Of a stretch of DNA of 64,000 nucleotides, positions 10,653 to 57,681 are shown one piece after another. A program made the translations under genes and the position numbers. The stretch spans positions 434,001 to 498,000 of the IMG/VR virus record IMGVR_UViG_3300049793_000366; one strand, written 5' to 3'. The notes under the pieces were generated by a model. The model had not been told where the DNA came from, ran no database searches, and worked only from the letters and a program-made list of their open reading frames with translations. Numbering within the stretch: position 1 is the stretch's first letter; each line of letters begins with the position of its first letter.

Positions 10653-11054
10653 ATGGAAGAAGAAAAAATACCAACATCATTACAAGAAGCAATTGACTTT
10701 TTAATAGAAGCTGATGCTAATTTAGGAATGGGAAGCGGAATGGGAATGAGAAACAGTTGGGGGTTATGGCACGGTTCAAAACTCGCGCAATGGTTTTATA
10801 GACATCAAATATACCATGCTGATGATATGAGTGGCATCATTATGGATTCTTATAAAAGAACTAAAAATGGTGAACCAATTGAGTTAAAAGAACAAATAGC
10901 TAAGTATCATAAACACTGGGAGATAAATCATGGACCAAACCATTTAAGCGAAATGAAAGCCATGATTGTTGAAAATCTTATTAAGATGCGGGCTGAAAAT
11001 CTTGATGAAATATTGAAAGATATTAACTCTGAGGATATTGAAGGTAAAAGCTAA
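10653..11054 (+). CDS. hypothetical protein (DUF6794-like), C-tag
   Basis: GMGMRNSWGLW...YHADDMSGII; MRAENLDEIL near the end. Confidence 0.65.
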   Translation: MEEEKIPTSLQEAIDFLIEADANLGMGSGMGMRNSWGLWHGSKLAQWFYRHQIYHADDMSGIIMDSYKRTKNGEPIELKEQIAKYHKHWEINHGPNHLSEMKAMIVENLIKMRAENLDEILKDINSEDIEGKS

Positions 11055-11361
11055 TATTTACAGCAGTATAGTCAAAGCCACTGACTCTGACATTTTGTAA
11101 TTCAGCACCACATTCTTTAGCAATATAGGGTAGAATTCCATTGTTGAGTTCTAATGCTTCATCGTTATTAACCGCATTTGGGAATCTCTCAGTAGCAGTT
11201 ACGCTGAATAGGTTATTTCCCATATTTCTTACTTGGACCTTCATTAATTCGAAGTTTTCGTTGTCGGATAGGTATGATTCTACATCAGATTCAATATCGT
11301 CCATATCAATTCTGCCTTTCATATTAAAAATAAATTTCTCATACTTTTGAAGGTGCTTCAT
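11023..11361 (-). CDS. hypothetical protein, N-motif
   Basis: Starts MKHLQKYEKF; AATATATA just upstream. Confidence 0.8.
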   Translation of the reverse strand: MKHLQKYEKFIFNMKGRIDMDDIESDVESYLSDNENFELMKVQVRNMGNNLFSVTATERFPNAVNNDEALELNNGILPYIAKECGAELQNVRVSGFDYTAVNISFYLQYPQS

Positions 11362-11402
11362 ATGTTATATATTATTTAAAACATATAAAAAATTACACTT
11401 TT

Positions 11403-11418
11403 AATTAAACTGCCACAC
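11403..11418 (+). repeat. isolated copy of the 16-bp AATTAAAATGCCACAC repeat family
   Basis: AATTAAACTGCCACAC, 21 nt upstream of the recombinase ATG. Confidence 0.75.
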
Positions 11419-11439
11419 CATTATTCGATATAATCAACT

Positions 11440-12015
11440 ATGAATTCTATACTATTTACAAGGGTATCTACACCACAACAAACACACGATGAACAGGTTG
11501 ATACGCTGACTAAAATATCACAGGATAAAGGCTGGTCAATAGATACAGTATATCGCGAGGTTGGTTCTGGGCTTATTTCAGGTAATTTGAGGGAAACACT
11601 GACAACTATGTTGAAATACATACCAACAACCACAGTGTCAGTAGTAGCAGTTTCAAACATATCTAAGCTATCTTGTAGACCCAATGACGTAGAGAAATTA
11701 ATGACTTGGTTACATAGTAAGGGTATCTCAATATATGTTGCTAATCTTGATATTTTATCAATTGGTAATGAAGATATAATTAGAGAGCAAGCATTGTTAG
11801 CAGAGCAACAAATTAATCAAATGAAGAGTAATTATGTTGAGAGTAATAAACTACCAATTGGTAGAAAAGAGGGTTATAGAAAGCCTAAGATATCAATGAT
11901 GCTTGACCACAAAGATGTTGCTGATTTACTTAAGCAGGGATATTCTATACGAAAGGTTGGTGAAATGACTGGTAAAAGCACAACCACCGTACAAAAAGTT
12001 AAAAGATTATTGTGA
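11440..12015 (+). CDS. serine recombinase (resolvase/invertase family) with C-terminal HTH
   Basis: FTRVST..Q...Q catalytic motif, E.GSG, degenerate SKLSCR, C-terminal HTH GYSIRKVGEMTGKSTTTV. Confidence 0.8.
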   Translation: MNSILFTRVSTPQQTHDEQVDTLTKISQDKGWSIDTVYREVGSGLISGNLRETLTTMLKYIPTTTVSVVAVSNISKLSCRPNDVEKLMTWLHSKGISIYVANLDILSIGNEDIIREQALLAEQQINQMKSNYVESNKLPIGRKEGYRKPKISMMLDHKDVADLLKQGYSIRKVGEMTGKSTTTVQKVKRLL

Positions 12016-12284
12016 TTAACCCAACCGAAAATGAATTAGACAATTTCGTTTACTATAAGTTACAAGAAGATATAAAAAACAGTCCAAATAACGGACATAG
12101 CCCTCGTGTTAATGATGCACTTAGTGGTAAATATAAACTAATTTATTATAGATATGGTGTTGGTAGGGTCAAAGTAATGATGTACGTTGAGTCAGAAGAG
12201 AAAGAAGTAGGAGTCTGTATATTCGATGATACAGAATTTGACAATTGGTTAAGGGAAACCAAGCTCAGTCAGCTAATCAGCTAA
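12012..12284 (+). CDS. hypothetical protein, C-tag
   Basis: Ends LRETKLSQLIS. Confidence 0.75.
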   Translation: MINPTENELDNFVYYKLQEDIKNSPNNGHSPRVNDALSGKYKLIYYRYGVGRVKVMMYVESEEKEVGVCIFDDTEFDNWLRETKLSQLIS

Positions 12285-12286
12285 TA

Positions 12287-12318
12287 TTTGCAAATCCGCA
12301 TTTTAATCCGTACATTTG
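12287..12318 (+). promoter_or_regulatory. Bacteroidota-type promoter
   Basis: TTTG-N20-TACATTTG, ATG at 12323. Confidence 0.8.
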
Positions 12319-20842: not shown

Positions 20843-21088
20843 ATGAATAAGTACTTCTGTTATTGTATAGAAGAAATAGAAACCACTGGGTATCACACTT
20901 CATTGTTCGAGGTCGGAGTTATGTATGAATATGCGTATAAGACAAATGAAGTATCAGCAGGATATATTAGAATCTATGTTAATCCAAAAAATAGTATTCA
21001 ACTAACTCATAAACAATTCAGAAGGTTTTTCAAACCAGTAACCGAGAGACGGGATATGTTAATCAATGATATTATAGGAACAGATTAA
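20843..21088 (+). CDS. CxC-family small protein, C-tag
   Basis: FCYCIEE...VGVMYEY...FRRFF...RRDMLINDII. Confidence 0.75.
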   Translation: MNKYFCYCIEEIETTGYHTSLFEVGVMYEYAYKTNEVSAGYIRIYVNPKNSIQLTHKQFRRFFKPVTERRDMLINDIIGTD

Positions 21089-22241
21089 ACGTCAGCGTTG
21101 CTTTATCACCTCTAACACTACCAATAGCAGCTTCCTTTGTTATATCCTTTAAATCATCAAAAGCATTTTTCAATCCATTTTTGAACTCAATTAGTTGCAT
21201 AAACTTTGGGATAAACTTAGCATTATAAAACTCTTCAACCGAGAATGTGACTACGTATGAATTTGGTTTCTCAATTACGTTCATCAATCCTTTATACTTA
21301 CTATTCAAATGTGGTAATATATCATAGCTTGGTAAGCTAACACCATCCAACTCTTTTGCTAAATCAGAAATATGTGCTTCTAAATCACAATCATTATTAA
21401 ATACCGACATTATCATAGCTACATCAAATAATCTATTTAATAGTTCTTCTTTGTTAGCTGAGAAATTTTGCTTATGTCGAATTGAGCCATACTTAGTTTT
21501 ATGATAACCATAACCAATTTTAATAGAGAATTCAAAGTTACAACTACCATGTTCATTTTCATTATTGAATCTGAATCCACCTAAGTCAGTAGTTTTATTG
21601 TAGTGATATAGAAATAAATCCGTTATACCATCTTCGCTTATTGTTGGATTAATATCTTTAGCCGCCATCGTTATCGATTCTACTGTCCAACCTTTATCTT
21701 CAATTAAGATGTTAGTGATATAATTTACTAACTCATTAGGGTCTAATTGACCACTATCACCAGCAGACTCTCTATCTCTCTTCTCGATAACTGAATAACT
21801 ATTGGTATAATCTTCATATATAGAATATAAATCTATAATCAATTTATATTCTTTCATTTTCTCGTCATCAAAAATATTTAAATTGAAATTAGTAATCTCA
21901 AAACTACCGTACAAAGTAAATAAAGCCTCTAAAGATGGGATGATATTATCTATGAATCCGTTTCCCTGTATATTTGTTTTATTAAGTCGCTCATTATATA
22001 AGTCGAAATATGACATATGATAACCAGAGTTCTTTAACCTCTTAGATACTTTCTTAATTGCTTCTAAAAATTCCTTATTCAATGTAACTGAATCTGCTGA
22101 ATACACATACTGAGAAGGAAATCCTGAAACAGGTAAAACAGATTTAACAAAATCTAAATCCAATAAGTCAATCATATTTGAATTGACATCTACTTCGCTA
22201 CTCACGTTTAAATTCTCGTTATATGTTTTAAGATATCTCAT
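21072..22241 (-). CDS. hypothetical protein, N-motif (389 aa)
   Basis: Starts MRYLKTYNE; AATATATA upstream. Confidence 0.8.
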   Translation of the reverse strand: MRYLKTYNENLNVSSEVDVNSNMIDLLDLDFVKSVLPVSGFPSQYVYSADSVTLNKEFLEAIKKVSKRLKNSGYHMSYFDLYNERLNKTNIQGNGFIDNIIPSLEALFTLYGSFEITNFNLNIFDDEKMKEYKLIIDLYSIYEDYTNSYSVIEKRDRESAGDSGQLDPNELVNYITNILIEDKGWTVESITMAAKDINPTISEDGITDLFLYHYNKTTDLGGFRFNNENEHGSCNFEFSIKIGYGYHKTKYGSIRHKQNFSANKEELLNRLFDVAMIMSVFNNDCDLEAHISDLAKELDGVSLPSYDILPHLNSKYKGLMNVIEKPNSYVVTFSVEEFYNAKFIPKFMQLIEFKNGLKNAFDDLKDITKEAAIGSVRGDKATLTFNLFL

Positions 22242-22251: not shown

Positions 22252-22602
22252 TTAACTCCAGCTCACTGTTATTACAATTGTGTCAGTAAACCTAAATGAT
22301 GCTCTATATCCATCAGCGTGTAGCTTTTTGATTATCCTCTCACACATACTGAATAAATTCTTGTATTTATCGAGGTTTTCATAAAATAAATGACAATCAT
22401 GTACACTATAATAACCATTTAAATTTGGTGCGCTGTGTACGTAAATATGTGCTTCTGTTGTCTTTTTCTCAGTAAAATAGCTAACATCAATATCTTCTGT
22501 GTCATCAAGCTCAGTCAGTAGTTCCTTCATTAAGCCGGTTGTAAGCTCCGCGTGTAATTTGTCAAGATTTTCTGAATTTTCAAATGACTTTAAGTATTTC
22601 AT
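22252..22602 (-). CDS. hypothetical protein, N-motif
   Basis: Starts MKYLKSFEN; AATATATA upstream. Confidence 0.8.
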   Translation of the reverse strand: MKYLKSFENSENLDKLHAELTTGLMKELLTELDDTEDIDVSYFTEKKTTEAHIYVHSAPNLNGYYSVHDCHLFYENLDKYKNLFSMCERIIKKLHADGYRASFRFTDTIVITVSWS

Positions 22603-22626: not shown

Positions 22627-23055
22627 ATGATTAAATCGTTCAAACTATTTGAAAATAATTCAGACTCAAATTCTGCTAAAATTTTGGCTCAACTTGGTGA
22701 TATAAAATCACAATGCTTTGCGTCAATACAATCAGAGCTTAAGAGAATTAAAGGTATTTATATGAGAGGATTTAATACCGAGGACTTAACTTATGATGAT
22801 AGTGAGGACAGAGATTTTGATGGATTTTTAGAGCTAATTGAGCATTTTTCTAAGGATTTTTATGTAGAACACTATGATACTACTGAAAATCACATGGTGA
22901 TAGCAATAGATACGAATGGTGAAGAAATACTAGTAGAATGGGGTGACGATTACCAAACATTCCCGATTACTGAACTTGATGTAGTTGAATCAGTAAAACT
23001 TCTTGGAGTTTTAGAGAAAATGGTTAGCTATGAACAAATAGAAATGAGAGACTAA
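22627..23055 (+). CDS. hypothetical protein, N-motif variant
   Basis: Starts MIKSFKLFEN; TATATA upstream. Confidence 0.8.
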   Translation: MIKSFKLFENNSDSNSAKILAQLGDIKSQCFASIQSELKRIKGIYMRGFNTEDLTYDDSEDRDFDGFLELIEHFSKDFYVEHYDTTENHMVIAIDTNGEEILVEWGDDYQTFPITELDVVESVKLLGVLEKMVSYEQIEMRD

Positions 23056-23588
23056 TGAAGAAGAATATAAAACTATACGAAGGATTCATAGAGAATATCA
23101 AAAACGACTTCGCCAGAACTTTGTATCAAAGGAGACAAAGATTTGAAGATTGTTTACAAATATTAAAGGATGAATATGGCGTTGATTACTATGAACAATC
23201 ATTATCTGATGTATTCACACAAGCTAAAATAGAATATATGAATGTTGAGGATATTGATAAGTTTCCACTATCAGATACGCTCATAGATGACATTATAAAA
23301 ACGGTAAAGAGACTGAGACAATACGAAGATATTGATATTGAAGGTCGTATTACAATGCGTTTAAAGGGCTCAAATTATAAAAAAAGTGTATTTTTTAGCA
23401 CAAATGATTGGTATGATACACCAAATCCTACCGAGAGTCAAAGAAGATATATCAAGAATCCAAATGATATTAAAGCACTTTTTGATGAGAGAATGGTTCA
23501 ATTAATGAAAGCCAAAAGAGAACTAAAAGATGGTGATGATAGCCACGATAATTATATTGTATCTCTAATAAATATATCTATATGCTAA
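23055..23588 (+). CDS. hypothetical protein, N-motif
   Basis: Starts MKKNIKLYEGF. Confidence 0.8.
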   Translation: MKKNIKLYEGFIENIKNDFARTLYQRRQRFEDCLQILKDEYGVDYYEQSLSDVFTQAKIEYMNVEDIDKFPLSDTLIDDIIKTVKRLRQYEDIDIEGRITMRLKGSNYKKSVFFSTNDWYDTPNPTESQRRYIKNPNDIKALFDERMVQLMKAKRELKDGDDSHDNYIVSLINISIC

Positions 23589-23806
23589 TGAAACACTTAA
23601 TGGATTTTAAATTATTCGAAGAAAAAAGCCTTGAATCAAGCTATTTATACTACAAAGAACTTGTAGATGATGGTAAGAAAAGAGCCAAGAACTCATCAGG
23701 TGGTGAGAATGAAATGGATATGGAAAACCTTACGCATAATAGAAAGATGATGAACAGAGCTAAAGCCGCGCTCAAAAAAGCAGGTAAAGAAATACCAAAG
23801 AAGTAA
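23588..23806 (+). CDS. hypothetical protein, N-motif
   Basis: Starts MKHLMDFKLFEE. Confidence 0.75.
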   Translation: MKHLMDFKLFEEKSLESSYLYYKELVDDGKKRAKNSSGGENEMDMENLTHNRKMMNRAKAALKKAGKEIPKK

Positions 23807-24279
23807 TGAAACACTTAAAGCTATTCGAAGGATTTATGGATGACATCAGACAATCAGTTGTTGATGTGTTCGACAATGCTCGAAAGCCTTATGATGCTTG
23901 TTTACACGAGTTAATCGATGATTATGGTTTACAATTCGATGGTGATAAAATCACTAATATGTTTTCAGATAGGTGTTTAGTGTACTATATAAACGAACCA
24001 ACTGAACTGAGCTTAGAAGCTGTAAATAAGATAGTCAGAGCAGTCAAAAGATTGGGTGAGTTCGAAGAACTTCGTATCGCTGGTGCTATCACACTTTACT
24101 TTAATAACTCACCGATATCAGCATCATTCGATAAGAAAGTTGATATACATAAATATGTTAGAAATATAATGAATACTAAGCTAACTCAATATTATGGTGA
24201 TGAACACGAAAGAGTAATAGAACCAGAATATTCAGAGTTTACTTTCACAGTAAAATTCACATTATACCAAGCAACTTAA
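23806..24279 (+). CDS. hypothetical protein, N-motif
   Basis: Starts MKHLKLFEGF. Confidence 0.8.
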   Translation: MKHLKLFEGFMDDIRQSVVDVFDNARKPYDACLHELIDDYGLQFDGDKITNMFSDRCLVYYINEPTELSLEAVNKIVRAVKRLGEFEELRIAGAITLYFNNSPISASFDKKVDIHKYVRNIMNTKLTQYYGDEHERVIEPEYSEFTFTVKFTLYQAT

Positions 24280-24526: not shown

Positions 24527-24916
24527 ATGAAACACATTAAGAAATTCAACGAAGATGCCGAGCATTTGGTTAGTAAGGAATACTTAGAGCCATTCTTCTT
24601 GGAGCTTAGTGATGTGTACGGTGAAGATGTTGAAATAACATTTTCTGGTGAAACTCAGGCTGATGTTGAACTTACATTCTCCAATATCATTTTAAATAGA
24701 ATGAATAAAGGATATAAAGTAGATGGTAGTGAACATGATTACTCATATGATGTTCTAATCGATGCTTATTCAAAAGCCGCTAATATTACCACATCCTTGA
24801 AAAAGATAGCGAAAAAGATTGATGCTGATGGTCTTTACCAATGTAGAATGTTTGTAAATAAACCATCACATAAGATAAAATATAGCTTCATTGTGTTTAA
24901 TAAACACTTTGATTAA
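24527..24916 (+). CDS. hypothetical protein, N-motif
   Basis: Starts MKHIKKFNE; AATATATA upstream. Confidence 0.8.
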   Translation: MKHIKKFNEDAEHLVSKEYLEPFFLELSDVYGEDVEITFSGETQADVELTFSNIILNRMNKGYKVDGSEHDYSYDVLIDAYSKAANITTSLKKIAKKIDADGLYQCRMFVNKPSHKIKYSFIVFNKHFD

Positions 24917-25509
24917 TTCTCTTTAAATACTATATAATCCGCTGATAAATAACCCTTCTTAGTCTTATACCTTTGTTCAATCATTGTTAAGCTAAATAAG
25001 TCTCCCGCTTTTTTACCAATATACATATGTAGACCATAAGATGATAACTTCTTATTAACTCGTAATAATTCTTGTAATAACTTTCTATCAACCAATACCG
25101 TATTAGAAAAGTCAAACTGCAAAAAGTTTACAGACGTTTTTGGTGTAGAAACTAATTCGTATTCATCAATTAATCCTTGAAAGTTAGAAATAATTTCCTG
25201 TATTCTATTATGAACATGGGCTTTAATTTCAACATCCATCTTACTTCTATAACTTCTTCCGATTGCCTCTGTCTCAGACCTTAAATCTGTTATGAATCCT
25301 TCAAATAGTTTAATTACGGATTCATTAAATGACTCTTTAAATATTCTAAACTTAAGTAACGGTTTACCATTGATAGTCACATCACCTTTAGCATTCTTAC
25401 CAATCTTCTTCACAACAATCTTCTTGTTCTTGAATCTTCCGCCCAAGACCGTATCACCCACGCTAATAGGTATCTTAATCATTTCGTCTATATGCTTAAG
25501 GTATCTCAT
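24913..25509 (-). CDS. hypothetical protein with two N-motif copies (apparent fusion)
   Basis: MRYLKHIDE... plus internal SFNESVIKLFEGF. Confidence 0.75.
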   Translation of the reverse strand: MRYLKHIDEMIKIPISVGDTVLGGRFKNKKIVVKKIGKNAKGDVTINGKPLLKFRIFKESFNESVIKLFEGFITDLRSETEAIGRSYRSKMDVEIKAHVHNRIQEIISNFQGLIDEYELVSTPKTSVNFLQFDFSNTVLVDRKLLQELLRVNKKLSSYGLHMYIGKKAGDLFSLTMIEQRYKTKKGYLSADYIVFKEN

Positions 25510-25931
25510 AAGTCAACTACATTTATCATAAAACTACCACCATCTGTGGTGATTGTTACTTCTTTATATTTATTAATTAGTTTAATAAAATCATCAACAG
25601 TTCTTCCACTATTAACTGCGTTCTTTAAACCAGTACCATATCCATTTAATTCAATTGCCATATAATGAAAGTCCTTCACTTGAATGAAAGAACCATTTTG
25701 TCTTAGTTTTCTATCAGCCATTGCTAACTCTTTCATAAACTCAGCAGTAACATCAAACTTTCTATCTATTATGAAGCAATATGACTCATCATAATACCTA
25801 AACTCAAGCTCATAGTCATCTATTAAAATTTGTAAAGAGTTCTCTATTAACTTCAAATACTTATCAATAGAAGCATCCTGCTCACGTTGTAAATCAGCTA
25901 TAAATCCTTCATATAGTTTAATCTGCTTCAT
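25506..25931 (-). CDS. hypothetical protein, N-motif
   Basis: Starts MKQIKLYEGF. Confidence 0.8.
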   Translation of the reverse strand: MKQIKLYEGFIADLQREQDASIDKYLKLIENSLQILIDDYELEFRYYDESYCFIIDRKFDVTAEFMKELAMADRKLRQNGSFIQVKDFHYMAIELNGYGTGLKNAVNSGRTVDDFIKLINKYKEVTITTDGGSFMINVVDL

Positions 25932-26307
25932 GTCCCACCATTTTTTCAAAGAATACCCTGAACCAGGTTAAATCAGCAATGTAAACCTCACAACTATAAA
26001 TACCATCTAAGGTTATTTTATTCAATGCTTTTTTTAATAATAAGTTAAACTCAAGAAGTCTCCTTGATGCTTCTGTGTACCTATCAAATTCACTCAATCC
26101 CATCATTGATGGTGTTAGACCTTGTGATGTTAATGTGTCAGTGAAATCAAGTCTCAATGATACCTCATCCATATTCCAATCAAATTCAACACCATCGATA
26201 TCTTTAATTTCCTGAAAGAACGGCTCTACATAACTAAGAAGATCCTGTTGTTCATCAAGTCTTGATTCTGTAACTCTATATTCGTCGTATACCTTTAAGT
26301 GTTTCAT
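25918..26307 (-). CDS. hypothetical protein, N-motif
   Basis: Starts MKHLKVYDE. Confidence 0.8.
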   Translation of the reverse strand: MKHLKVYDEYRVTESRLDEQQDLLSYVEPFFQEIKDIDGVEFDWNMDEVSLRLDFTDTLTSQGLTPSMMGLSEFDRYTEASRRLLEFNLLLKKALNKITLDGIYSCEVYIADLTWFRVFFEKMVGHEAD

Positions 26308-26308: not shown

Positions 26309-26692
26309 TTATACTATTACTTCTCTGCTTATATTTACAGCAATCGCACCAACACGGTTAACTCTTACTGATATCTCATAACCTAACTGAGCCAGTTCAA
26401 CAAATGCCTTAAACTCTGCTTCATTCATTATGGTAGCTGAATTACCAACACTCATCCATACCTGTGATATGTCATTCACATCACCGTTTATGATGTAGTT
26501 ACCATCAACATCCACTAAATTAACAGAGAAAACAGACCAATAATCAATCCCACATTTATCCAATACAGAATGTAATTTATTGTTCTCTCTACGTCTTATC
26601 TCAAAGAACTCATCAGTTTCACCATTCAATCTGAATTTGGATCCAGTATCGGGTGCTTCATTTTGCGACTCAAATCTTTTAAGATATCTCAT
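26309..26692 (-). CDS. hypothetical protein, N-motif
   Basis: Starts MRYLKRFES; AATATATA upstream. Confidence 0.8.
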   Translation of the reverse strand: MRYLKRFESQNEAPDTGSKFRLNGETDEFFEIRRRENNKLHSVLDKCGIDYWSVFSVNLVDVDGNYIINGDVNDISQVWMSVGNSATIMNEAEFKAFVELAQLGYEISVRVNRVGAIAVNISREVIV

Positions 26693-27280: not shown

Positions 27281-27566
27281 CGTTGGTGACATAATAACTA
27301 TTAAAGAAAATTGCCGTTTGGCAAGCGGATCTTATATCAAAGATTCTAAATTACTCTATCCGCTTATTGGTAAAGAAGCATACATCGTTCTAATCCAATC
27401 AGATTATAGTCAGGCTGCTAAAAATCATTACTGTCATTATAAACTTAAACTCGTAGACGAAGCCGACCATAGCTCGTTCGGCTACTTCAAAGTATTCCAC
27501 GATGATGGCATCTGTATCAAAACATACCGCAGAGAAGAACAACTAAATAAAATACTTAAACCCTAA
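27270..27566 (+). CDS. hypothetical protein, C-tag
   Basis: YNVGDIITIK (KOW-like start)...RREEQLNKIL. Confidence 0.75.
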   Translation: MWYNVGDIITIKENCRLASGSYIKDSKLLYPLIGKEAYIVLIQSDYSQAAKNHYCHYKLKLVDEADHSSFGYFKVFHDDGICIKTYRREEQLNKILKP

Positions 27567-27569
27567 ACT

Positions 27570-27920
27570 ATGAAAAGACTAATCATCACCGCAGTATTAT
27601 TACTGACAACATTCTTATTGACCTCACAAACCACACAACACTTCAACTTTAAAACAGTTAAGAAAGACACCATCAGCCGTAAAGTAAATACATACGTTAC
27701 GCTCGATAAGACCGCTAAACGCCTTTTTATACAAGATAGTACTCTTCATATGAAGACCACACTTTTCATCACAAGATATTCATTGGCTACCAAATACCAA
27801 CTTATGGACTGCAAAGATTCAGCATCTAAAGAAAGTATCTATGTAGAAGTGTACAAAGGAACCAAAGAATCCTATATGAAATTACAATACGCTAACGACC
27901 AAACCTATATCTACAAATGA
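27570..27920 (+). CDS. putative exported protein
   Basis: Signal-peptide-like MKRLIITAVLLLTTFLLTSQ. Confidence 0.75.
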   Translation: MKRLIITAVLLLTTFLLTSQTTQHFNFKTVKKDTISRKVNTYVTLDKTAKRLFIQDSTLHMKTTLFITRYSLATKYQLMDCKDSASKESIYVEVYKGTKESYMKLQYANDQTYIYK

Positions 27921-28225
27921 TAACACTTACCAAAATGGGTGATAGCTACGTTGTTGTAGAGTCCGATGGTGTACAGTTATGTATCTTAACCACCTCACTC
28001 ACTGTCTACGATAAGAACACACACGAAGCATATAAGAATATTATGCTACTGCTTAACGCAGACCAGCAACAACTTATATTAGGTAAGTTCAAGATAAAGG
28101 AAACAGAACACGATAAACCGTTCGATGATGTGGAATTCATCCGGGATAACCTAATGAACATCGAACACCCAGAATTCTTATTAGTAAGAAGAGACCTAAA
28201 ATTAAGTGAACTAACGAGTGATTAA
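27917..28225 (+). CDS. hypothetical protein, C-tag
   Basis: Ends RRDLKLSELTSD. Confidence 0.75.
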   Translation: MITLTKMGDSYVVVESDGVQLCILTTSLTVYDKNTHEAYKNIMLLLNADQQQLILGKFKIKETEHDKPFDDVEFIRDNLMNIEHPEFLLVRRDLKLSELTSD

Positions 28226-28574
28226 GCAGAAATATAAATACAAACTTAAATATTCAGAAATAAAAGAAACAGACTCAGCTACCAATAGAAACATATTAGT
28301 ATTATCCACCAAAGATGAAGTATTAATAGAATTCATATTAAGTAACTCAATAGAATCAGGTAATAGTAAATACCAATTGAAACGAGCGATATACTTCCTG
28401 AACCAAAGCATTAACCACACAGGCGAGTACGAATACGTTACCATCTGTTGTAGTTATTTGGATGTTGGGATGGATGATATAGACTTCATTGAGTATTACT
28501 TCAACGAATTGATGGATGATGATAAACTTAAACACATTAGAAGACATTTAATAATTGATAAAGCTTTAGAATAA
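28218..28574 (+). CDS. hypothetical protein, C-tag variant
   Basis: Ends RRHLIIDKALE. Confidence 0.7.
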   Translation: MIKQKYKYKLKYSEIKETDSATNRNILVLSTKDEVLIEFILSNSIESGNSKYQLKRAIYFLNQSINHTGEYEYVTICCSYLDVGMDDIDFIEYYFNELMDDDKLKHIRRHLIIDKALE

Positions 28575-28744
28575 TGGAAAAAATTAAAAAAGAACAATTT
28601 GCTGTTTATGAGAAAAAACCAGCTCATCAAAAAGACGTTAATGGTATCATTTTAGCTCCATATAATACCAAAGAAGAGGCTGAAAAAGCTGGTACTAAAT
28701 ATGGTTACTCTGGGGATAACTATTATGTTGATAAATTAATATAG
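28574..28744 (+). CDS. small hypothetical protein (56 aa, absent from ORF track)
   Basis: TAATG-coupled, MEKIKKEQFAVYEKKP...YYVDKLI*, fills the gap. Confidence 0.6.
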   Translation: MEKIKKEQFAVYEKKPAHQKDVNGIILAPYNTKEEAEKAGTKYGYSGDNYYVDKLI

Positions 28745-28746
28745 AC

Positions 28747-28992
28747 ATGAGAGGATTTTGTAAATGTAGAGTAACATTCAAAAAAGATATACACACCTAC
28801 GTTGGTAACCAAATATATGAATACCGTATATATGGTAGTATGTATACCGTTGAGACACCATCACTGCTTAACCCAGATTTAAGTGTCGGGTATCAATTCA
28901 GTCAAAAAGCATTTGATGAGCAATTTGATGAGTTTACCCAGCAACAAATAAGAGAAATGAGATTAGATACCGTATTAAAAGACAATGAGTAA
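28747..28992 (+). CDS. CxC-family small protein, C-tag
   Basis: FCKCRV...GNQIYEY...FDEQF...IREMRLDTVL. Confidence 0.8.
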   Translation: MRGFCKCRVTFKKDIHTYVGNQIYEYRIYGSMYTVETPSLLNPDLSVGYQFSQKAFDEQFDEFTQQQIREMRLDTVLKDNE

Positions 28993-29251
28993 AGAATCAC
29001 AACTAATAGAAGGCTATGAGAATTTCAAAGGCTTTGAAGTAAACTCTATTGTCATATGCGTAGATGCCAAAGATTGCATATCCATCAAAGAAGGTGATGA
29101 GTATACCGTATTGAACCAACCACACTATCATAACATGAGAGGCGTTGGTGTAGAGGTTAGTAGTCCAGGTACTTCTAATTTTTATCATCCAGGTCGATTC
29201 ATCAGTAAAGAAGAACTAAGAAATAAGAAAATCCAAACCATATTAGAATGA
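28985..29251 (+). CDS. small protein, C-tag
   Basis: VICVDA...EGDEYTV...LRNKKIQTIL. Confidence 0.8.
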   Translation: MSKESQLIEGYENFKGFEVNSIVICVDAKDCISIKEGDEYTVLNQPHYHNMRGVGVEVSSPGTSNFYHPGRFISKEELRNKKIQTILE

Positions 29252-29550
29252 CTGTACAATTTCATAGAACAGACACCGAGAAGTTTATACTACTCATCTT
29301 CACTGGTGGATCTCCGCTCGATAACCGCAAAGCTCTGGATAACTACCTAAGCGATTTAAAAGTTGATGATAACGGAGAATATGTAGATTATAACCGCTAT
29401 GACTTCTGTGATATCAAATACTATATGGATGTCTTATGCCTCTTATATAAGAAACCACACAGCTTAAACGATGAAGATTTTGTTGATTATAATAAGAACT
29501 ATCCAACAGCACTGAAAAGAATTAAAGGACTAAATAAATTACTGGTATGA
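29248..29550 (+). CDS. hypothetical protein
   Basis: ATGA coupling; ends RIKGLNKLLV (tag-like). Confidence 0.7.
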   Translation: MTVQFHRTDTEKFILLIFTGGSPLDNRKALDNYLSDLKVDDNGEYVDYNRYDFCDIKYYMDVLCLLYKKPHSLNDEDFVDYNKNYPTALKRIKGLNKLLV

Positions 29551-29741
29551 GCCAACGAATGGAAGAATTTAACTACGTAAGTGGTGGGCATCACAATAAA
29601 TTAATTGTGGTTGATATATTATATATGCTAAAGAAACAAATGCGAACAGAAGCTTTTCATAGACCAATTGAAATAGTATCAGACTCAAAAGAACTTCTTA
29701 TAATCGCGGATTATGTCAAAAACAATAAGATAAAATTCTAA
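29547..29741 (+). CDS. hypothetical protein
   Basis: ATGA coupling. Confidence 0.65.
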   Translation: MSQRMEEFNYVSGGHHNKLIVVDILYMLKKQMRTEAFHRPIEIVSDSKELLIIADYVKNNKIKF

Positions 29742-36625: not shown

Positions 36626-36626
36626 A

Positions 36627-36658
36627 TTTGGTAATACCGGACTTTATCAATATATTTG
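36627..36658 (+). promoter_or_regulatory. Bacteroidota-type promoter
   Basis: TTTG-N20-TATATTTG, ATG at 36663. Confidence 0.75.
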
Positions 36659-36662
36659 AAAT

Positions 36663-36788: not shown

Positions 36789-36789
36789 A

Positions 36790-38394: not shown

Positions 38395-38859
38395 ATGAAA
38401 CATATTAAACTATTCGAGGCTTTTTCTGATGATTTAAGTAATATACATCTTGACCTTAGACGTGCCGAGCAAAAGCTTAAGACTGAATACCGCGATAAAG
38501 AGAAACAATTGGGTGATAAGTATAAGAGTGCTGTTGAAGCTTGTATTCAAGACTTATTAGAAGATTATGATGCTAAGTTCATTTATGATATGTTTCCACA
38601 CACTGGTCAGAAGATTGGCTTCGAAGTTAGTGTATTCTTTGATAAACCTACTGGGAGTCAATTAGAAACTCTATTACCAATCATAGCAAGGACTGATAAG
38701 AAGCTTACAGCAGAAGGTTTTATAGTTTCTTATGTATGTGAACATAATCTTGGTAACTTCTCCAATGATGATTATTCTAAAGATTTAGCTGAATTATCAA
38801 AGAATTTCATACATTACTCTGGTTGTGTTTCATTAAAGGTTAGTATGAGAATCAACTAA
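38395..38859 (+). CDS. hypothetical protein, N-motif
   Basis: Starts MKHIKLFEAF; AATATATA upstream. Confidence 0.8.
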   Translation: MKHIKLFEAFSDDLSNIHLDLRRAEQKLKTEYRDKEKQLGDKYKSAVEACIQDLLEDYDAKFIYDMFPHTGQKIGFEVSVFFDKPTGSQLETLLPIIARTDKKLTAEGFIVSYVCEHNLGNFSNDDYSKDLAELSKNFIHYSGCVSLKVSMRIN

Positions 38860-40610: not shown

Positions 40611-41024
40611 ATGAAACATCTTAGACACTTTAATGAGCATTTGAATAATGAGCTTCAAGAAATAGCTGAGTTCTTTTACTATGCATTTGAAGACCATAAC
40701 TATTATGAGTTCAAACCACTCAACAAAGGATATACTGATACTGTTTATTATAATGGTGTTGTTGAGGTGAGAGATATGTCTTCTGGTCAGTATGAGGTTT
40801 ATATGAATCTTGGTATACCTGAGCCATATAGTGGTCCTTCTTTATTCGGTGGATCATCTACTATGAAATACAGTAATGATGCTGAGTTAAATAAGTTAAA
40901 TGTTGAGGTTAAGAAGATAGCGAGAAAGCTTGGTTTCAGTGAGAAGTCTCATGTGGATTACATATGTAGTTACTTAGATGAGACTGATAATATGATAAAA
41001 GCGTCAATTGTTATTTATAAATAA
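40611..41024 (+). CDS. hypothetical protein, N-motif
   Basis: Starts MKHLRHFNE; GATATATA upstream. Confidence 0.8.
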   Translation: MKHLRHFNEHLNNELQEIAEFFYYAFEDHNYYEFKPLNKGYTDTVYYNGVVEVRDMSSGQYEVYMNLGIPEPYSGPSLFGGSSTMKYSNDAELNKLNVEVKKIARKLGFSEKSHVDYICSYLDETDNMIKASIVIYK

Positions 41025-41035: not shown

Positions 41036-41434
41036 ATGAAATATTTACAAACATTCAATGAAAGAAAATTCTACACTATCAAATATGATAATCAGGAATT
41101 AAGTATCGATGATATTAACAATGGTGAATGGTCTTTAACTGACCATTTAAACCCTAAGATTGATAAGCTTATCATGGCATTAGGTGATATGAAAGCGCGA
41201 GTTAATACACACGGTAGCAAAGTCTATAAAGACGAAGCAAAGAAGATAGATTTGATGAGTCAGATATTAGATTCTGATGTTGCTGAGTCTGCTCCAATTG
41301 AAGCAACTGAGACTACAGTTGATATTAATATCGCTTTAGTTGATGAGGTTGAACCGATTGAAGATGTGTCAGTAGAAGTTGATAATACACCAATGAATAT
41401 AGGTGGTGCTATTGATAGGCTTATGTCAACCTAA
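41036..41434 (+). CDS. hypothetical protein, N-motif
   Basis: Starts MKYLQTFNE; AATATATA upstream. Confidence 0.8.
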   Translation: MKYLQTFNERKFYTIKYDNQELSIDDINNGEWSLTDHLNPKIDKLIMALGDMKARVNTHGSKVYKDEAKKIDLMSQILDSDVAESAPIEATETTVDINIALVDEVEPIEDVSVEVDNTPMNIGGAIDRLMST

Positions 41435-48281: not shown

Positions 48282-48698
48282 ATGAAACATCTTAGAAGAT
48301 TTAACGAATCAGTAGAATTAGATTATGCTCCAATCTTTACGGAGTTACTTGAAGAAGATTTAGGTGCTGTGGCTATCTTTGATTTAGTAGAGGATTGGGA
48401 AAATGGTGGTGCTGAGTTTTGGTATTTTACAAATGATGAGATGGATGGTGTAAAGGTATCTGATGTAAATGATAAGATAAGTATGACCAAGGATCTATTG
48501 ACTGCTAGTATTCTTGACGCATTAAAGGATGGTACAATAATGGATAACCCATCTAAGGTAATATGTATTGTTTATAACCCTGAGCCAGTAGTACAAGAGC
48601 TAATCGATAAAATAAAACGTAAGTGTGGTAAGGTAAGTACTACAGTAAGAACTGGTACATGGGGTATTTATAGTGAAGAAACAATCCTAATATTCTAA
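48282..48698 (+). CDS. hypothetical protein, N-motif
   Basis: MKHLRRFNE; AATATATA at 48269. Confidence 0.8.
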   Translation: MKHLRRFNESVELDYAPIFTELLEEDLGAVAIFDLVEDWENGGAEFWYFTNDEMDGVKVSDVNDKISMTKDLLTASILDALKDGTIMDNPSKVICIVYNPEPVVQELIDKIKRKCGKVSTTVRTGTWGIYSEETILIF

Positions 48699-53561: not shown

Positions 53562-54002
53562 TTATATGTCCATATTAGTAAAGTCAATCTCATAGATAAC
53601 AATCTCACATGAAGTAATCTTGTAGAATCTACTTCTTTCATTATCATATAGTCTTTTAAGTTCAGTAAGCTTTATTCTATCCTTGCTGATTGGTTTATGT
53701 CTATCATTTATATTAAGGTAACTGAATTGAAATCCCAACCCCATTGCTGATAACTTTTTTGATAGTATATCAAGGCTCTTGAAGAAGTCACCGTTCAACG
53801 GTATGTCACTTAAAGCCTCATAACCAAATCTGGATATCGGATGTGTCTCATCATCAAGCACAGTTCTACTATGTTGAAAGTCATAGACATCCATCAATGC
53901 CTGCATAACATTATCAACCTCTGAGCGAGATTTATCTATCTCAACACTAAGGTGTTTGTTTATAATAGTGATATATCCTTCGAATGTCTTAAGGTGTTTC
54001 AT
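53562..54002 (-). CDS. hypothetical protein, N-motif
   Basis: Starts MKHLKTFEGY. Confidence 0.8.
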   Translation of the reverse strand: MKHLKTFEGYITIINKHLSVEIDKSRSEVDNVMQALMDVYDFQHSRTVLDDETHPISRFGYEALSDIPLNGDFFKSLDILSKKLSAMGLGFQFSYLNINDRHKPISKDRIKLTELKRLYDNERSRFYKITSCEIVIYEIDFTNMDI

Positions 54003-54384
54003 GTTCCCAGATTGTCATTTTGATTTGAGTATTACCCTGTTCAATTTTCAAATAGGAAGACTTATATCCTTCGGCTTCCAGTTTAAGTATTATCCTCTGA
54101 CACTTCTTAATGATGTTATAATAATCATCAAGCCTTTCATTTAGCTCACTGAATAATCCTTTATCTGATGATACACCTACCGCGTTCGGTGACCTATAAG
54201 TACCAACGTGTGTTTTTAATTGTAGATACACTTCCAATAGTTCAGCACCAGATACATCATCATCGTAGTAGATAATCTCTACGTCATGGTTGTCAGTTAT
54301 ATCAGTCATAAGATATTTAACCTTATCTGCTAACTTTTTCATACCAGGTGACATTGCTTCGTTGAATCTATATAGGTGTTTCAT
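53989..54384 (-). CDS. hypothetical protein, N-motif
   Basis: Starts MKHLYRFNE. Confidence 0.8.
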   Translation of the reverse strand: MKHLYRFNEAMSPGMKKLADKVKYLMTDITDNHDVEIIYYDDDVSGAELLEVYLQLKTHVGTYRSPNAVGVSSDKGLFSELNERLDDYYNIIKKCQRIILKLEAEGYKSSYLKIEQGNTQIKMTIWEHETP

Positions 54385-54793
54385 TGTTCTCATATTGTTT
54401 TAGTAGGTCAATTATCTTATCAGCTAATTCTCTACCCATATCATCCGCATTAACTTCAGTCCACATAATAGCATATTTTATATCTACATTAGCTCCGTTT
54501 TCCAATAGGAATTTCGTTATATCATAATGCCCTAGTTCAGCCGCATATCTTAGTGTCATACCACTATCAGCATTTATATCTGCTACATTCTTATTAACTA
54601 TCTTCTTAACCAACTCAAAATCACCAAATTTAGCAGCTAATCTCAATGCTCTTGACGCGATATCACGGTATGAAGCATCTCTATTTCTCTTGATGAATAA
54701 GCTAAGACGTTCAATGACATCAGCATTGTTAATACCCAAATCAGATATAAAGGTAAATGTGTCATTCTCCTTAAGATATTTAAGATATTTCAT
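54368..54793 (-). CDS. ankyrin-repeat protein, N-motif
   Basis: MKYLKYLKE; ALRLAAKFGDFELVKKIV; TLRYAAELGHYDITKFLLENGANV. Confidence 0.85.
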   Translation of the reverse strand: MKYLKYLKENDTFTFISDLGINNADVIERLSLFIKRNRDASYRDIASRALRLAAKFGDFELVKKIVNKNVADINADSGMTLRYAAELGHYDITKFLLENGANVDIKYAIMWTEVNADDMGRELADKIIDLLKQYENNETPI

Positions 54794-54794: not shown

Positions 54795-55211
54795 TTAACT
54801 ATTGTATGGTTCATCAATTGATATCCTAACTTGTCTGATAACAAGTGGTACAGCATTACCTAAATTTCTATATTTCTCAGGGTGTTCGGTGATATCCTTA
54901 TGTTTCTTAACTAAATAGTCAAGTGAATTGATATATAATGCTCCGGTAGCCACGAATGATATATACAACCCGTATGCTTTAACCTTCTTTTCAGCGCGAA
55001 GTAACATCTCTACGAACTCATCGGTAACTGTTATATCCATGTTAGATTCATAAAGGAATTGACCATCGTGTAGCTTATCAAATACTAGTCCATAATCATC
55101 AATCAATTCGTTCAAACAAGCATCGATGTCAACACGGTATTTATCCTGTATGGCTCTTATTTCCCTGAACATATCAATCATGTAACCTTCGTATAATTTA
55201 AGATGCTTCAT
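54795..55211 (-). CDS. hypothetical protein, N-motif
   Basis: MKHLKLYEGY; AATATATA upstream. Confidence 0.8.
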   Translation of the reverse strand: MKHLKLYEGYMIDMFREIRAIQDKYRVDIDACLNELIDDYGLVFDKLHDGQFLYESNMDITVTDEFVEMLLRAEKKVKAYGLYISFVATGALYINSLDYLVKKHKDITEHPEKYRNLGNAVPLVIRQVRISIDEPYNS

Positions 55212-55258: not shown

Positions 55259-55263
55259 GTATA

Positions 55264-55566
55264 ATGAAAAATACTATAACAATCAATAATGATGAGATTA
55301 GTACTCACTTATCATATACTCTTATAGAGAAAGATACCGCCTTTATTGGACACATCACTGCGCTAAATATACCATTCACATCACCTACTAAAGATAAAGC
55401 TTCTGATATTGCTAAAGGTCTTGTAAAAGCTTTATTTCATAAATGGGGAAATACTGGTGGTTTAGAATTAATAAGAGAGAAGATAAAGTCGTTTAATTTC
55501 ACACAGGTATATGATACGCACTACGAATATAGTTTACCAGTACCAAAATCTTCATATCAAATGTAA
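55264..55566 (+). CDS. hypothetical protein
   Basis: ATG after the promoter. Confidence 0.7.
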   Translation: MKNTITINNDEISTHLSYTLIEKDTAFIGHITALNIPFTSPTKDKASDIAKGLVKALFHKWGNTGGLELIREKIKSFNFTQVYDTHYEYSLPVPKSSYQM

Positions 55567-55880
55567 TGAAAGGCGTTAGAATAAATGAATCAGTCTGGAC
55601 ATCAGACAATGGTAATACTGGTAAAGTAGCCATTTTCACCTATGCGGGTGATTTAGATCCAAGTGCTGTATTAGAACAAGCAGTCAGAAACTATGTAGGT
55701 GATAGTAAGAAATATGTAGAACTAATGGATGCTCATATGAACTGCCCCTGGATGCGTGGCATCGTATCTGGTATAAATGATATGAGTCAGGTTGAATGGT
55801 CGGGGCAAACACTTAAACAATTTTTACGCGAGAACACAATAAATGAAATATTAAACAATCAAGATGATATTAACACCTGA
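55566..55880 (+). CDS. hypothetical protein, C-tag
   Basis: LRENTINEILN. Confidence 0.75.
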   Translation: MKGVRINESVWTSDNGNTGKVAIFTYAGDLDPSAVLEQAVRNYVGDSKKYVELMDAHMNCPWMRGIVSGINDMSQVEWSGQTLKQFLRENTINEILNNQDDINT

Positions 55881-56139
55881 ACAATTAAAGAAGTTCGAGC
55901 TTACTAAAGCTATGCACGAACCCGTACATATATGTGCGTTAAGAGTAACACCGAAGTCTTCTCAGAAGAAATACAAGCTTTATGTGCTTAAAAACGGTGA
56001 AATCAAGGATTTTAAGCTAAAATTCGATGATATTGTGTCATTGGATGTCGTTGGTGGGTATGGTTCTGGTACTATCAGCGTTGAGGATTATGTAGAACGT
56101 TCTAATGATATATGTAACTATACAAAGAATCATCAGTAA
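55864..56139 (+). CDS. hypothetical protein
   Basis: Co-oriented overlapping ORF. Confidence 0.7.
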   Translation: MILTPEQLKKFELTKAMHEPVHICALRVTPKSSQKKYKLYVLKNGEIKDFKLKFDDIVSLDVVGGYGSGTISVEDYVERSNDICNYTKNHQ

Positions 56140-56687
56140 TGTTCAGATTCAGAAAGAGTAACAATTACATCACATTAAAGGATGTTGGGTATAAAGCCTT
56201 CTTTCACTTACAAGATCCTGCTACCAATGAAGAACTTAGTAGGACTATGGGTATTGCTATGTGTAACGAGTATTATATCAATGCTCCGAACCATGTGGAA
56301 ATATTTGAAAAGACTATGCTTAGTGGAAGAATCGTCAAAAAATACACAAGCAACGATTCATATTGTAGAGTGAGAACCAGATGGAGATACGGCACCACAA
56401 ATAGAAAGGGAGAGTATGACGGTGATTCTTGGACAGAGAAAGTTGAAGAGTTTATGATGCAACCCACTCACAGAAGATGTCCTATATGTGAAGCAATATA
56501 TAAACAGGTTCCTTTCACAACGATTATAAACAACAGAAATATGGAATTACAAGAAGTATATACAAAGCTGAATAACTTATTGGATTTACAGGAACACAGG
56601 GACTTAACCACTAAGGAAGAAGCTGAACTGAAAAATCTTAAGAAACTACGTAATGAATTGGACCCTGAGTGGGCTAAACGATTATAA
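56139..56687 (+). CDS. hypothetical protein
   Basis: TAATG coupling; CPIC motif. Confidence 0.75.
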   Translation: MFRFRKSNNYITLKDVGYKAFFHLQDPATNEELSRTMGIAMCNEYYINAPNHVEIFEKTMLSGRIVKKYTSNDSYCRVRTRWRYGTTNRKGEYDGDSWTEKVEEFMMQPTHRRCPICEAIYKQVPFTTIINNRNMELQEVYTKLNNLLDLQEHRDLTTKEEAELKNLKKLRNELDPEWAKRL

Positions 56688-56704
56688 TAGTTAATATATA
56701 CTCT

Positions 56705-57160
56705 ATGAGGTATATAAAAACGTTCGAGGGTTTAAGGGCTGACTTAATTGCTATTGATGCTAAATTCGCTGATAGGAAGAAGGAGTTAGAATTAGAACTT
56801 CATAATATAGATAAAGAAACCCACGCGCTTAAAGCCAAAGCCATTCTCTCTAATAAGGAGAAGGTATCTGAGTTCGCGTTTGAAATACTTGACGAATACG
56901 ATACTACTGTTGTCTATAAGAATAAATTAGATATTCAAAGCAGACACTTCAATATAAACATTGAGATAACTCCGGATATAGACTTCGACAAACTTAAATC
57001 AATCGTATCAAGATTTGAAAAGAAATGCTTATCTGAACAATTCGCAATGAGATTCAATATCAGATACGAAGATGGTAGAAGCACACACGCTGATACCTTT
57101 AGCGATGCACTACCTAAGCTGGTGGATAAAACAGCGAGACTATCTATATTAGCCAGATAA
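56705..57160 (+). CDS. hypothetical protein, N-motif
   Basis: MRYIKTFEG; AATATATA upstream. Confidence 0.8.
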   Translation: MRYIKTFEGLRADLIAIDAKFADRKKELELELHNIDKETHALKAKAILSNKEKVSEFAFEILDEYDTTVVYKNKLDIQSRHFNINIEITPDIDFDKLKSIVSRFEKKCLSEQFAMRFNIRYEDGRSTHADTFSDALPKLVDKTARLSILAR

Positions 57161-57681
57161 TGAAGAATCTAAAACTATTCGAAGATTTTAACGAGTCACA
57201 TAGATATAACACGAGGGATTTTACATTCAGTGGAGTTCCAACGGATAGCGAATTGATAGATACGTTCATGTCTATGATAGACGATGATATTATTGTCAGA
57301 CTCAAGCGTGATTTGGATTTTGCTGTGGCTCTTAAAGGACCATCACGCACAATCAGACCAGTTAAAGAGAGTTGGGAATATACAATCAATACTGATGGTG
57401 TTTTGAATATTACTTCTCATAATCATACCGATATTGATGAGGAATCAAAGTTGGTTGGGTTCGTTGATAAGTTTCAGATATACTGTGAATCACCTCAAGA
57501 GATAGATATTTTACTAGGAAAAGAAGTAGATGATATAGCACTCGATGATTCAATCGTAAATAATGCTATGCGTAAGTTGAAGTCTTTAGAATGTGTTACT
57601 AGTGTTACGCATAAGAAGGTAACTGAATACTACTCAGTATTAATTGTACAATATAACAATCCAACGTTTATAATAATTTAA
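57160..57681 (+). CDS. hypothetical protein, N-motif
   Basis: MKNLKLFEDFNE. Confidence 0.8.
   Translation: MKNLKLFEDFNESHRYNTRDFTFSGVPTDSELIDTFMSMIDDDIIVRLKRDLDFAVALKGPSRTIRPVKESWEYTINTDGVLNITSHNHTDIDEESKLVGFVDKFQIYCESPQEIDILLGKEVDDIALDDSIVNNAMRKLKSLECVTSVTHKKVTEYYSVLIVQYNNPTFIII

Follow-up and report, generated by a model that had tools for sequence, protein, structure and literature searches.

Twenty-two open reading frames (ORFs) in the stretch of DNA analysed here begin with variants of one short peptide, which we call the tag and which resembles the capsid-targeting sequence (CTS) of phage T4. The stretch, hereafter the window, comprises 64,000 nucleotides (nt) and corresponds to bases 434,001-498,000 of a 507,910-bp virus record in IMG/VR (IMGVR_UViG_3300049793_000366, hereafter G000), which has a G+C content of 33% and is ~97% complete according to the CheckV estimate. 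Genes of G000 were called crudely, as the longest ATG-initiated ORF of at least 50 residues with overlaps removed greedily, so that totals are approximate; the 758 ORFs called in this way span 92.5% of the genome. The tagged ORFs of the window are listed here with their coordinates, strand and N-terminal residues. The promoter motif in this list is the octamer AATATATA, which is described below together with the six-paralog family.

11023..11361, minus strand: tagged ORF, 112 residues, MKHLQKYEKF; AATATATA ends 4 nt before the ATG.
21072..22241, minus strand: tagged ORF, 389 residues, MRYLKTYNEN; promoter motif 4 nt upstream; a Y-N-E-N site ends at residue 9; no Pfam family.
22252..22602, minus strand: tagged ORF, 116 residues, MKYLKSFENS; promoter motif 5 nt upstream.
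22627..23055, plus strand: variant tag, 142 residues, MIKSFKLFENN, with a lead that is shorter by one residue.
23055..23588, plus strand: tagged ORF, 177 residues, MKKNIKLYEGF, with one additional residue; six-paralog family.
23588..23806, plus strand: variant tag, 72 residues, MKHLMDFKLFEE, with a two-residue insertion; the first ATG of the ORF is at 23582.
23806..24279, plus strand: tagged ORF, 157 residues, MKHLKLFEGF; six-paralog family; modelled with AlphaFold2.
24527..24916, plus strand: tagged ORF, 129 residues, MKHIKKFNED; promoter motif 4 nt upstream.
24913..25509, minus strand: weak variant, 198 residues, MRYLKHIDEM, with Ile at position 7.
25506..25931, minus strand: tagged ORF, 141 residues, MKQIKLYEGF; six-paralog family.
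25918..26307, minus strand: tagged ORF, 129 residues, MKHLKVYDEY.
26309..26692, minus strand: tagged ORF, 127 residues, MRYLKRFESQ; promoter motif 6 nt upstream; first gene of a leftward tagged run from 26692 to 24913.
38395..38859, plus strand: tagged ORF, 154 residues, MKHIKLFEAF; six-paralog family; promoter motif 4 nt upstream.
40611..41024, plus strand: tagged ORF, 137 residues, MKHLRHFNEH.
41036..41434, plus strand: tagged ORF, 132 residues, MKYLQTFNER; promoter motif 4 nt upstream.
48282..48698, plus strand: tagged ORF, 138 residues, MKHLRRFNES; promoter motif 5 nt upstream; F-N-E-S site.
53562..54002, minus strand: tagged ORF, 146 residues, MKHLKTFEGY; six-paralog family.
53989..54384, minus strand: tagged ORF, 131 residues from MKHLYRFNEA; an upstream ATG is at 54393 (MRTMKHLYRFNE).
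54368..54793, minus strand: ankyrin-repeat protein, 141 residues from an internal ATG, with the weak tag MKYLKYLKEND; Ank_2 (9.9e-10) at residues 37-106.
54795..55211, minus strand: tagged ORF, 138 residues, MKHLKLYEGY; six-paralog family; promoter motif 4 nt upstream.
56705..57160, plus strand: tagged ORF, 151 residues, MRYIKTFEGL; promoter motif 4 nt upstream.
57160..57681, plus strand: tagged ORF, 173 residues, MKNLKLFEDF; a second site, F-N-E-S, ends at residue 12.

A preliminary description of this DNA had attributed a common N-terminal motif to 22 ORFs, and this is borne out, since all 22 coordinates correspond to ORFs with the N-terminus described. The eleven plus-strand positions given there are the ATGs; the eleven minus-strand positions turned out to be the stop ends, the corresponding ATGs being at 11361, 22241, 22602, 25509, 25931, 26307, 26692, 54002, 54384, 54793 and 55211. 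The register is strict in 16 of the 22 ORFs, while the other six (22627, 23055, 23588, 24913, 53989 and 54368) are offset or weaker variants.

The consensus of the tag is M-[KR]-[HY]-[LI]-[KR]-x-[FY]-[EN]-[E/x]-[FY], with a length of 10-13 residues; it can also be written as MKHLKxFExF, optionally followed by LNE. When scored with a position-specific scoring matrix (PSSM) for the motif, the N-termini of G000 fall into two clear groups, 59 of them scoring at least 17 and the next-best only 9.8. This set, widened to small start offsets, gives the 69 tagged proteins of G000. A genome-wide search for the motif, which the preliminary description had proposed, thus finds the tag on 69 of ~758 ORFs (~9%, or about one protein in eleven). 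The preliminary description had inferred an arsenal far larger than the three proteins of T4; its figure of 22 is an under-count, with about 69 candidates per genome and an occurrence throughout the clade. Glu is found at position 8 or 9 in 57 of the 69 tags, and within the first 14 residues in all of them. The motif is highly specific for N-termini: without its Met column and at a threshold of 14, it matches 55 of 758 N-termini versus 9 of 147,964 internal positions, most of these nine being at most 12 residues away from an alternative start. From the internal rate, ~0.1 N-terminal matches would be expected by chance. Codon usage at the tag positions is like that of the G000 genome (AAA/AAG of 42:17 and 24:22; Leu encoded by TTA and CTT), and the third-base identity is 0.53 where the residue is identical. 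Because synonymous codons vary as they do elsewhere in the genome, the constraint acts on the peptide.

The tag is shared by a group of huge phages. The major capsid protein of G000 is 65% identical to those of LR745206 and LR756502 (deposited as "uncultured phage", 635-642 kb) and 53-55% identical to those of LR756501/3/4 (636-735 kb); G000 and these relatives belong to the Mahaphage clade, with Bacteroidetes as predicted hosts (PMC7162821). Identity is ~30% to the Prevotella Lak phages and 25-27% to Tenacibaculum phage PTm1 and Sphingomonas phage PAU. A near-identical phage was not found when 22 kb were compared to GenBank phages by megablast. In a second complete genome, G008 (482,156 bp, G+C 37%), 63 of 727 ORFs are tagged with the consensus MKHIKLFExFLNE (the L of LNE being variable), and the motif matches 53 of 727 N-termini versus 4 of 142,483 internal positions. 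A BLASTP match in G008 is found for only 2 of the 69 tagged G000 proteins versus 130 of the 689 others. As far as can be judged from these two genomes, the cargo is replaced between genomes while the leader is kept. A degenerate DNA pattern of the tag has 62 matches in LR756502, the closest named relative, versus a single match of the reversed-pattern control; the same pattern has one match in PTm1, none in PAU and two in Lak-C1. With a stricter pattern, at least 120 loci were found in IMG/VR, and 207 ORFs begin with the tag among the matches listed. We sampled 23 carrier records from these loci, seven of which are at least 90% complete (271-676 kb), and all seven encode a Gp23-type capsid protein. 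The short carrier records are rated 5-36% complete and are read as fragments of ~700-kb genomes.

The G000 record itself may be incomplete. Two of its proteins, P0001 and P0121, are also present on a 711,805-bp contig, and the 508-kb record is classified as a provirus in IMG/VR. It may therefore be a trimmed part of a ~712-kb genome, in which case the tag count may be an underestimate.

Behind the tag, the proteins are largely unrelated. Once 14 residues are removed, BLASTP sorts the 69 proteins into 61 groups, of which 57 have a single member, three have two and one has six. As homology beyond the leader is restricted to the group of six and the three pairs, a single paralogous family was rejected. 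There is no Pfam or PHROG family common to the 69 proteins; searches with both collections returned only a P-loop kinase, a NUDIX protein, a weak GNAT match and a few unnamed PHROGs, with the ankyrin-repeat protein found separately. Nearly all tagged proteins are ORFans. In the kinase, the AAA_33 domain begins at residue 31, and in the NUDIX protein, which is encoded by the neighbouring gene, the domain begins at residue 64. The tag is absent from 119 of 119 kinase homologs among the matches listed (~53-64% identical); these begin directly at the conserved core or have another leader. The tagged kinase is shortened to 193 residues, its homologs having ~310. Both genes are part of a run in which all genes are tagged:

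G000 400668-403108 (= L006:2671-5108), minus strand: four-gene run with one late motif, encoding a 158-residue ORF, the kinase, the NUDIX protein and a 277-residue ORF.

The products of this run apparently are RNA- or nucleotide-directed enzymes that are expressed late, as far as their domains and the upstream motif indicate.

For the six-paralog family, an exhaustive profile search yielded 54 representatives, all of them unannotated and most of them tagged. At least four of the 54 begin just after the tag. Only a few columns are invariant in the family, and they include tag residues. A word-indexed search of 5.8 billion proteins with this main family of the window returned only the self-match. 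The AlphaFold2 model of the family member at 23806 has a predicted local distance difference test (pLDDT) score of 91 and a predicted template-modelling (pTM) score of 0.82, and the tag forms the beginning of a helix that extends from residue 2 to residue 32. Foldseek comparison of this fold to PDB and BFVD gave nothing at E <=0.001 or a template-modelling (TM) score above 0.36.

The upstream regions associate the tagged genes with head genes. The top-enriched 8-mer in the 50 nt upstream of G000 genes is AATATATA, usually embedded in TTAATATATA, which precedes 121 genes versus 5.3 expected. It resembles the T4 element TATAAATA, being A/T-rich and of the -10 type, and a homolog of gp55 is also present. 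Genes with this motif upstream include those for the portal, the protease-scaffold, the capsid protein (at a distance of 38 nt) and a head-decoration protein, as well as several very large ORFs. A second motif class, TTTG-N17-23-TAnnTTTG, which we take to be the sigma-A promoter type of Bacteroidota, is found upstream of 34 G000 genes. Within 50 nt, AATATATA precedes 38 of 69 tagged genes versus 83 of 689 other genes (odds ratio 8.9, p = 2e-15), and the host-type promoter precedes none of the 69 tagged genes versus 34 others. When same-strand operons are walked, 58 tagged genes are classified as late, none as early and 11 stay unassigned, while the other G000 genes comprise 218 late, 151 early and 316 unassigned genes and 4 with both motifs; late and early here denote association with the respective motif. 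In G008, both promoter classes are enriched, and the operon walk classifies 57 tagged genes as late and none as early. This pattern points to late expression of the tagged genes. The distance from the end of AATATATA to the ATG is only 4-7 nt in 62 genes, half of which (31) are tagged (in the window, for example, at ATGs 11361 and 22241 on the minus strand and 24527, 38395, 41036 and 56705 on the plus strand), which implies leaderless mRNAs.

A T4-like head module is located at 86.7-99 kb of G000. It codes for a gp15-like protein, the portal (PF07230, 9e-59), the capsid protein (Gp23, 4.6e-27), a gp55-like late sigma factor (phrog_234, 1.4e-7) and the following protein:

G000 93393-95666 (= L003:13393-15666): protease-scaffold fusion, 757 residues (phrog_207, 6e-30).

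The protease domain of this protein is 27% identical to T4 gp21 over 109 residues (BLASTP, E = 2e-6), and the alignment pairs GEFDHP with GELNHP (GE.xHP, His) and VSSRAAG with VSSRGLG (VSSR, Ser). A PF03420 search of the G000 genome gave no match, and neither did a phmmer search of the protease against PDB sequences. The C-terminal two-thirds are scaffold-like: a unit of 14 residues (Y-[LI]-A-E-N-x-D-K-x-I-x-Y-x-E) is repeated ~11 times in tandem, and a strongly acidic segment comes after the repeats. The combination of protease and repeat scaffold is also found in G008, while PTm1 has a fusion devoid of the repeats.

Sites of the type [LIVMFY]-x-E-[NSAG] connect this protein to the tag. The protease-scaffold has 21 of them in 757 residues, which is the maximum of the proteome (27.7 versus 5.9 per 1000 residues), and most of them are the tandem [LI]-A-E-N of the repeats; the same applies to G008. 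In the capsid propeptide, two [ILV]-x-E sites, each with N or S as the next residue, are conserved in G000, G008, PTm1 and PAU. The T4 scaffold gp22 contains LAEN and IAE sites. In T4, gp21 cuts gp22 into short fragments, and Alt is cleaved at ITE and LTE (PMC5694885). From these sites, we infer that the target of the G000 protease would be hydrophobic-x-E with N, S, A or G as the next residue, the cut being made behind the Glu. A [LIVMFY]-x-E-[NSAG] site is present within the first 15 residues of 35 of 69 tagged proteins versus 52 of 689 others (odds ratio 12.6, p = 4e-18). In G008, hydrophobic-x-E ends at residue 8 (L-F-E) in 50 of 63 tags, and a second one ends at residue 13 (L-N-E) in 25.

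Two further genes in or near the head module deserve mention. A gene for an M28-family peptidase (phrog_4191, 1e-68; G000 97610-98959 = L003:17610-18959) directly follows the capsid gene, and only 4 nt separate its ATG from a late motif; its product is a possible second processing enzyme of the head module. A 118-residue ORF (G000 82932-83288, minus strand) has a capsid-like VPVQPM motif, which is similar to the N-terminal part of proteins of the gp23/gp24 type; this ORF may be a fragment of a capsid gene or the remnant of a vertex protein.

The system with the closest resemblance to the tag is the CTS of T4, which is reported to bind the scaffolding core; the internal proteins of T-even phages are diverse, and the CTS is their only common feature (PMC3012670, PMC5694885). 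In the T4 record, the leaders are MKTYQEFIAE (IPII and IPIII) and MKTFKEF (IPI). Like the tag, the CTS is a leader of ~10 residues, counted from Met1, on otherwise unrelated small proteins, and it ends in a hydrophobic-x-Glu site of the gp21 protease type, as found in half of the G000 tags. Placed in register, the two have M1, K2, a hydrophobic residue at 4, K or Q at 5 and F7 in common. When they are aligned at the cleavage end, K-T-Y-Q-E-F-I-A-E of T4 pairs with K-L-F-E-N-F-L-N-E of G008, so that K, the aromatic residue, Q/E, F, I/L and E match; the common pattern is K-x-aromatic-[QE]-x-F-[IL]-x-E. The T4 leaders score -12 to +4.5 with the PSSM of the tag, the motif being too short for statistics. 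There are also differences: the tag has a different and longer consensus, its cargo includes recognisable enzymes, the scaffold of G000 is fused to the protease and has tandem repeats, and T4 has three CTS proteins while G000 has ~69 and the relatives examined have ~60 or more. The G000 system is predicted from sequence.

Phage PAU is the closest cultured relative that has a sister tag (capsid protein 25.5% identical). The pattern MK[TS][LI]xxL[YF]E has 18 forward-strand matches at ATGs of PAU versus none for the control, and is often followed by KLNE and A or S. Thirteen of these genes are within or beside the head module (gp131-133, 142, 143, 145, 146, 149, 150, 152-154 and 164). They include gp152, which is deposited as "scaffolding", and gp142 and gp154, which are both deposited as "internal capsid protein". 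The sister tag is nearly in register with that of the huge phages, having one additional residue before the aromatic one, and the strict huge-phage pattern has no match in PAU. On the basis of these annotations, the PAU sister tag is the best available link of such a leader to proteins inside the head.

Propeptides of phiKZ-like phages are more distant. SPN3US gp53 and gp54 and phiKZ gp93 are paralogous head proteins whose first 15 residues are identical; this segment carries protease motifs and has been cut off in the mature head, and the authors discuss such N-terminal propeptides in the context of the CTS (PMC5694885). They are unlike the tag, having an A/S/G-x-E motif, belonging to another capsid lineage and being processed from 8 of ~50 head proteins, with no proteome-wide tag. 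A further parallel is the cargo-loading peptide of encapsulins, where a short peptide at one terminus suffices for various enzymes to be packed into a shell of the HK97 fold; it differs in being located at the C-terminus, staying uncleaved, binding to the shell instead of a scaffold and serving one or a few cargo types. We found no paper on the tag motif or the PAU tag, a search with the motif string giving unrelated matches only. There thus appears to be no description in the searchable literature of a tag on the scale of a proteome, of its conservation across the clade, of the repeat scaffold or of the sister tag in PAU.

We consider it probable, if with modest confidence, that the tag is a cleavable capsid-targeting signal of the T4 CTS type which has expanded to ~9% of the proteome. 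The capsid-targeting reading of the preliminary description is supported in part, namely by a tag that is restricted to N-termini, its likeness to T4, the hydrophobic-x-E site, the gp21-like protease, the promoter shared with head genes and the PAU tag. Docking, cleavage, packaging, injection and effector roles of the tagged proteins are steps that we only infer. In this scenario, the tagged proteins would be synthesised late. Their N-terminal amphipathic helix (an L4/F7/F10 stripe flanked by Lys and Glu) would dock on the prohead core, which would be built from the 757-residue protease-scaffold fusion. The second half of the tag resembles the 14-residue scaffold repeat (F-L-N-E versus Y-L-A-E), and we speculate that this similarity suggests docking by mimicry. 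The shell would close round the tagged proteins, and the gp21-like protease would then cut after Glu at hydrophobic-x-E within the tag or at its end, while also chopping the scaffold. The matured cargo would be kept in the head and enter the next host alongside the DNA.

Several observations weigh against this scenario. A canonical site is present in only half of the G000 tags, and where the Glu is at position 8, K, S or T is frequently found at P3. The protease scores 18.7 bits against the Pfam family S77 (PF03420), which is below the cut-off of 27, so that its assignment to this family is tentative. In G008, the direct promoter link is non-significant (7 of 63 tagged genes versus 50 of 664 others), and the capsid gene has no late motif within 50 nt. 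In the one modelled family, the tag begins a continuous helix of 31 residues, so that cutting it might not be harmless if the model is correct. Without the tag, the tagged proteins are more acidic than the others (median isoelectric point 5.1 versus 5.8, p = 7e-4), unlike T4 IPII and IPIII, which are presumably basic. A set of 60-70 distinct cargo species would, to our knowledge, be unprecedented. The labels of the PAU proteins stem from notes of the depositor. The phage is uncultured, and its locus was found in only one DNA run (a soil metagenome); the one putative RNA run yielded no more than two ~200-nt contigs, which lie on the capsid gene and carry no start-site or timing signal.

The main rival explanation is that the tag is a real address, but one that leads elsewhere: to an intracellular phage compartment or complex, to a dedicated chaperone, or, as a degron that times turnover, to degradation by a protease of the host or the phage. 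Specificity for the N-terminus, unrelated cargo and conservation fit any address label, and the cargo proteins with known folds (kinase, NUDIX and ankyrin proteins) are of the cytoplasmic type. Moreover, another jumbo lineage has the leader MKxxIKxILREG on enzymes of the RNA-repair type. We nevertheless regard such a destination as rather unlikely, because it leaves unexplained why the hydrophobic-x-E-[NSAG] site of the tag also fills the scaffold and the capsid propeptide, why the tagged genes are co-regulated with head genes, and why the sister tag of PAU is found on the scaffold and on deposited internal capsid proteins and is clustered in the head module.

It is improbable, in our view, that the tag is a relic, left by an ancient family or by a cassette of promoter and 5' end that was duplicated and recombined in hypervariable regions and has no common function today. 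This would account for the many tagged genes in tandem arrays (21-26.7 kb and 53.5-57.7 kb of the window), for the one family of six paralogs, and for promoter and tag often travelling together at a distance of 4-7 nt. A DNA-level cassette is however not compatible with the randomised synonymous sites, and a relic would not be expected on unrelated known folds with tagless homologs, nor among the few invariant columns of a paralog family. The tag is also kept between genomes in which only 17% of the proteins have detectable homologs and which have essentially no cargo in common.

Least probable by far is a translation-initiation constraint favouring A/U-rich, unstructured first codons in leaderless or Shine-Dalgarno-less late mRNAs of a Bacteroidota host: it would fit the many potentially leaderless late mRNAs (AATATATA 4-7 nt before the ATG in 62 genes) and the Lys-rich second codons that are common genome-wide, but half of the genes with such a close promoter are untagged and 31 tagged genes have no promoter nearby, so that the tag is not a requirement of leaderless translation, and conservation extends to residues 7-13 by amino-acid class (F/Y, E, L/I) with codons left free. 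On the sequence evidence, the tag is an address-like leader at the protein level, neither a protein family nor a DNA signal; the readings as a single family, a DNA cassette and a translation signal were rejected on the grounds of cargo diversity, codon variation and the mismatch between promoter and tag.

Two other sets of small proteins were noted alongside the tagged ones. On the plus strand of the window, the region 27,500-37,100 contains ~35 tandem small ORFs (70-100 residues), a separate paralog array that lacks the tag; many of its members begin with MK.ICIK or have Cys-rich C.C motifs. In another jumbo-phage lineage, represented by a 264-kb contig (L174) from the European Nucleotide Archive (ENA), a different recurrent leader, MKxxIKxILRE[GN], was observed:

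L174 1962-2759, 5649-6812, 8769-9425 and 10001-10939: ORFs with the MKxxIKxILRE[GN]-type leader, comprising a kinase homolog, a PolyA_pol/CCA-adding-type enzyme and neighbours.

N-terminal tags may thus be lineage-specific dialects, if the recurrence of this leader is taken as a guide.

More tentatively, and with somewhat less conviction than we have in the capsid-targeting reading itself, we propose that huge phages of the T4 lineage use a cargo code which can be read from sequence. A cleavable tag that mimics the scaffold repeat would load 60-70 different, fast-evolving proteins per capsid for injection, and this cargo would include enzymes such as the P-loop kinase and the NUDIX hydrolase as well as the ankyrin protein. 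One ancient signal would have given rise to the T4 CTS, the leader of PAU and the tag as its dialects, and other jumbo lineages would possibly use other leaders, such as MKxxIKxILREG.

What huge phages use their enormous capsids and their hundreds of ORFan genes for is an open question. Should the tag be an address for the capsid, one could predict from sequence which proteins a clade of uncultured phages injects, and such a prediction would extend to dozens of IMG/VR genomes (270-735 kb), among which are the largest phage genomes known. The 60-70 candidates per genome would then be a rich source of first-strike proteins for anti-defence and host takeover, and the pair of tag and scaffold repeat would offer a compact means of packaging heterologous proteins in large capsids. 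The CTS, so far a peculiarity of three T4 proteins, would prove to be a system that is general and able to evolve.

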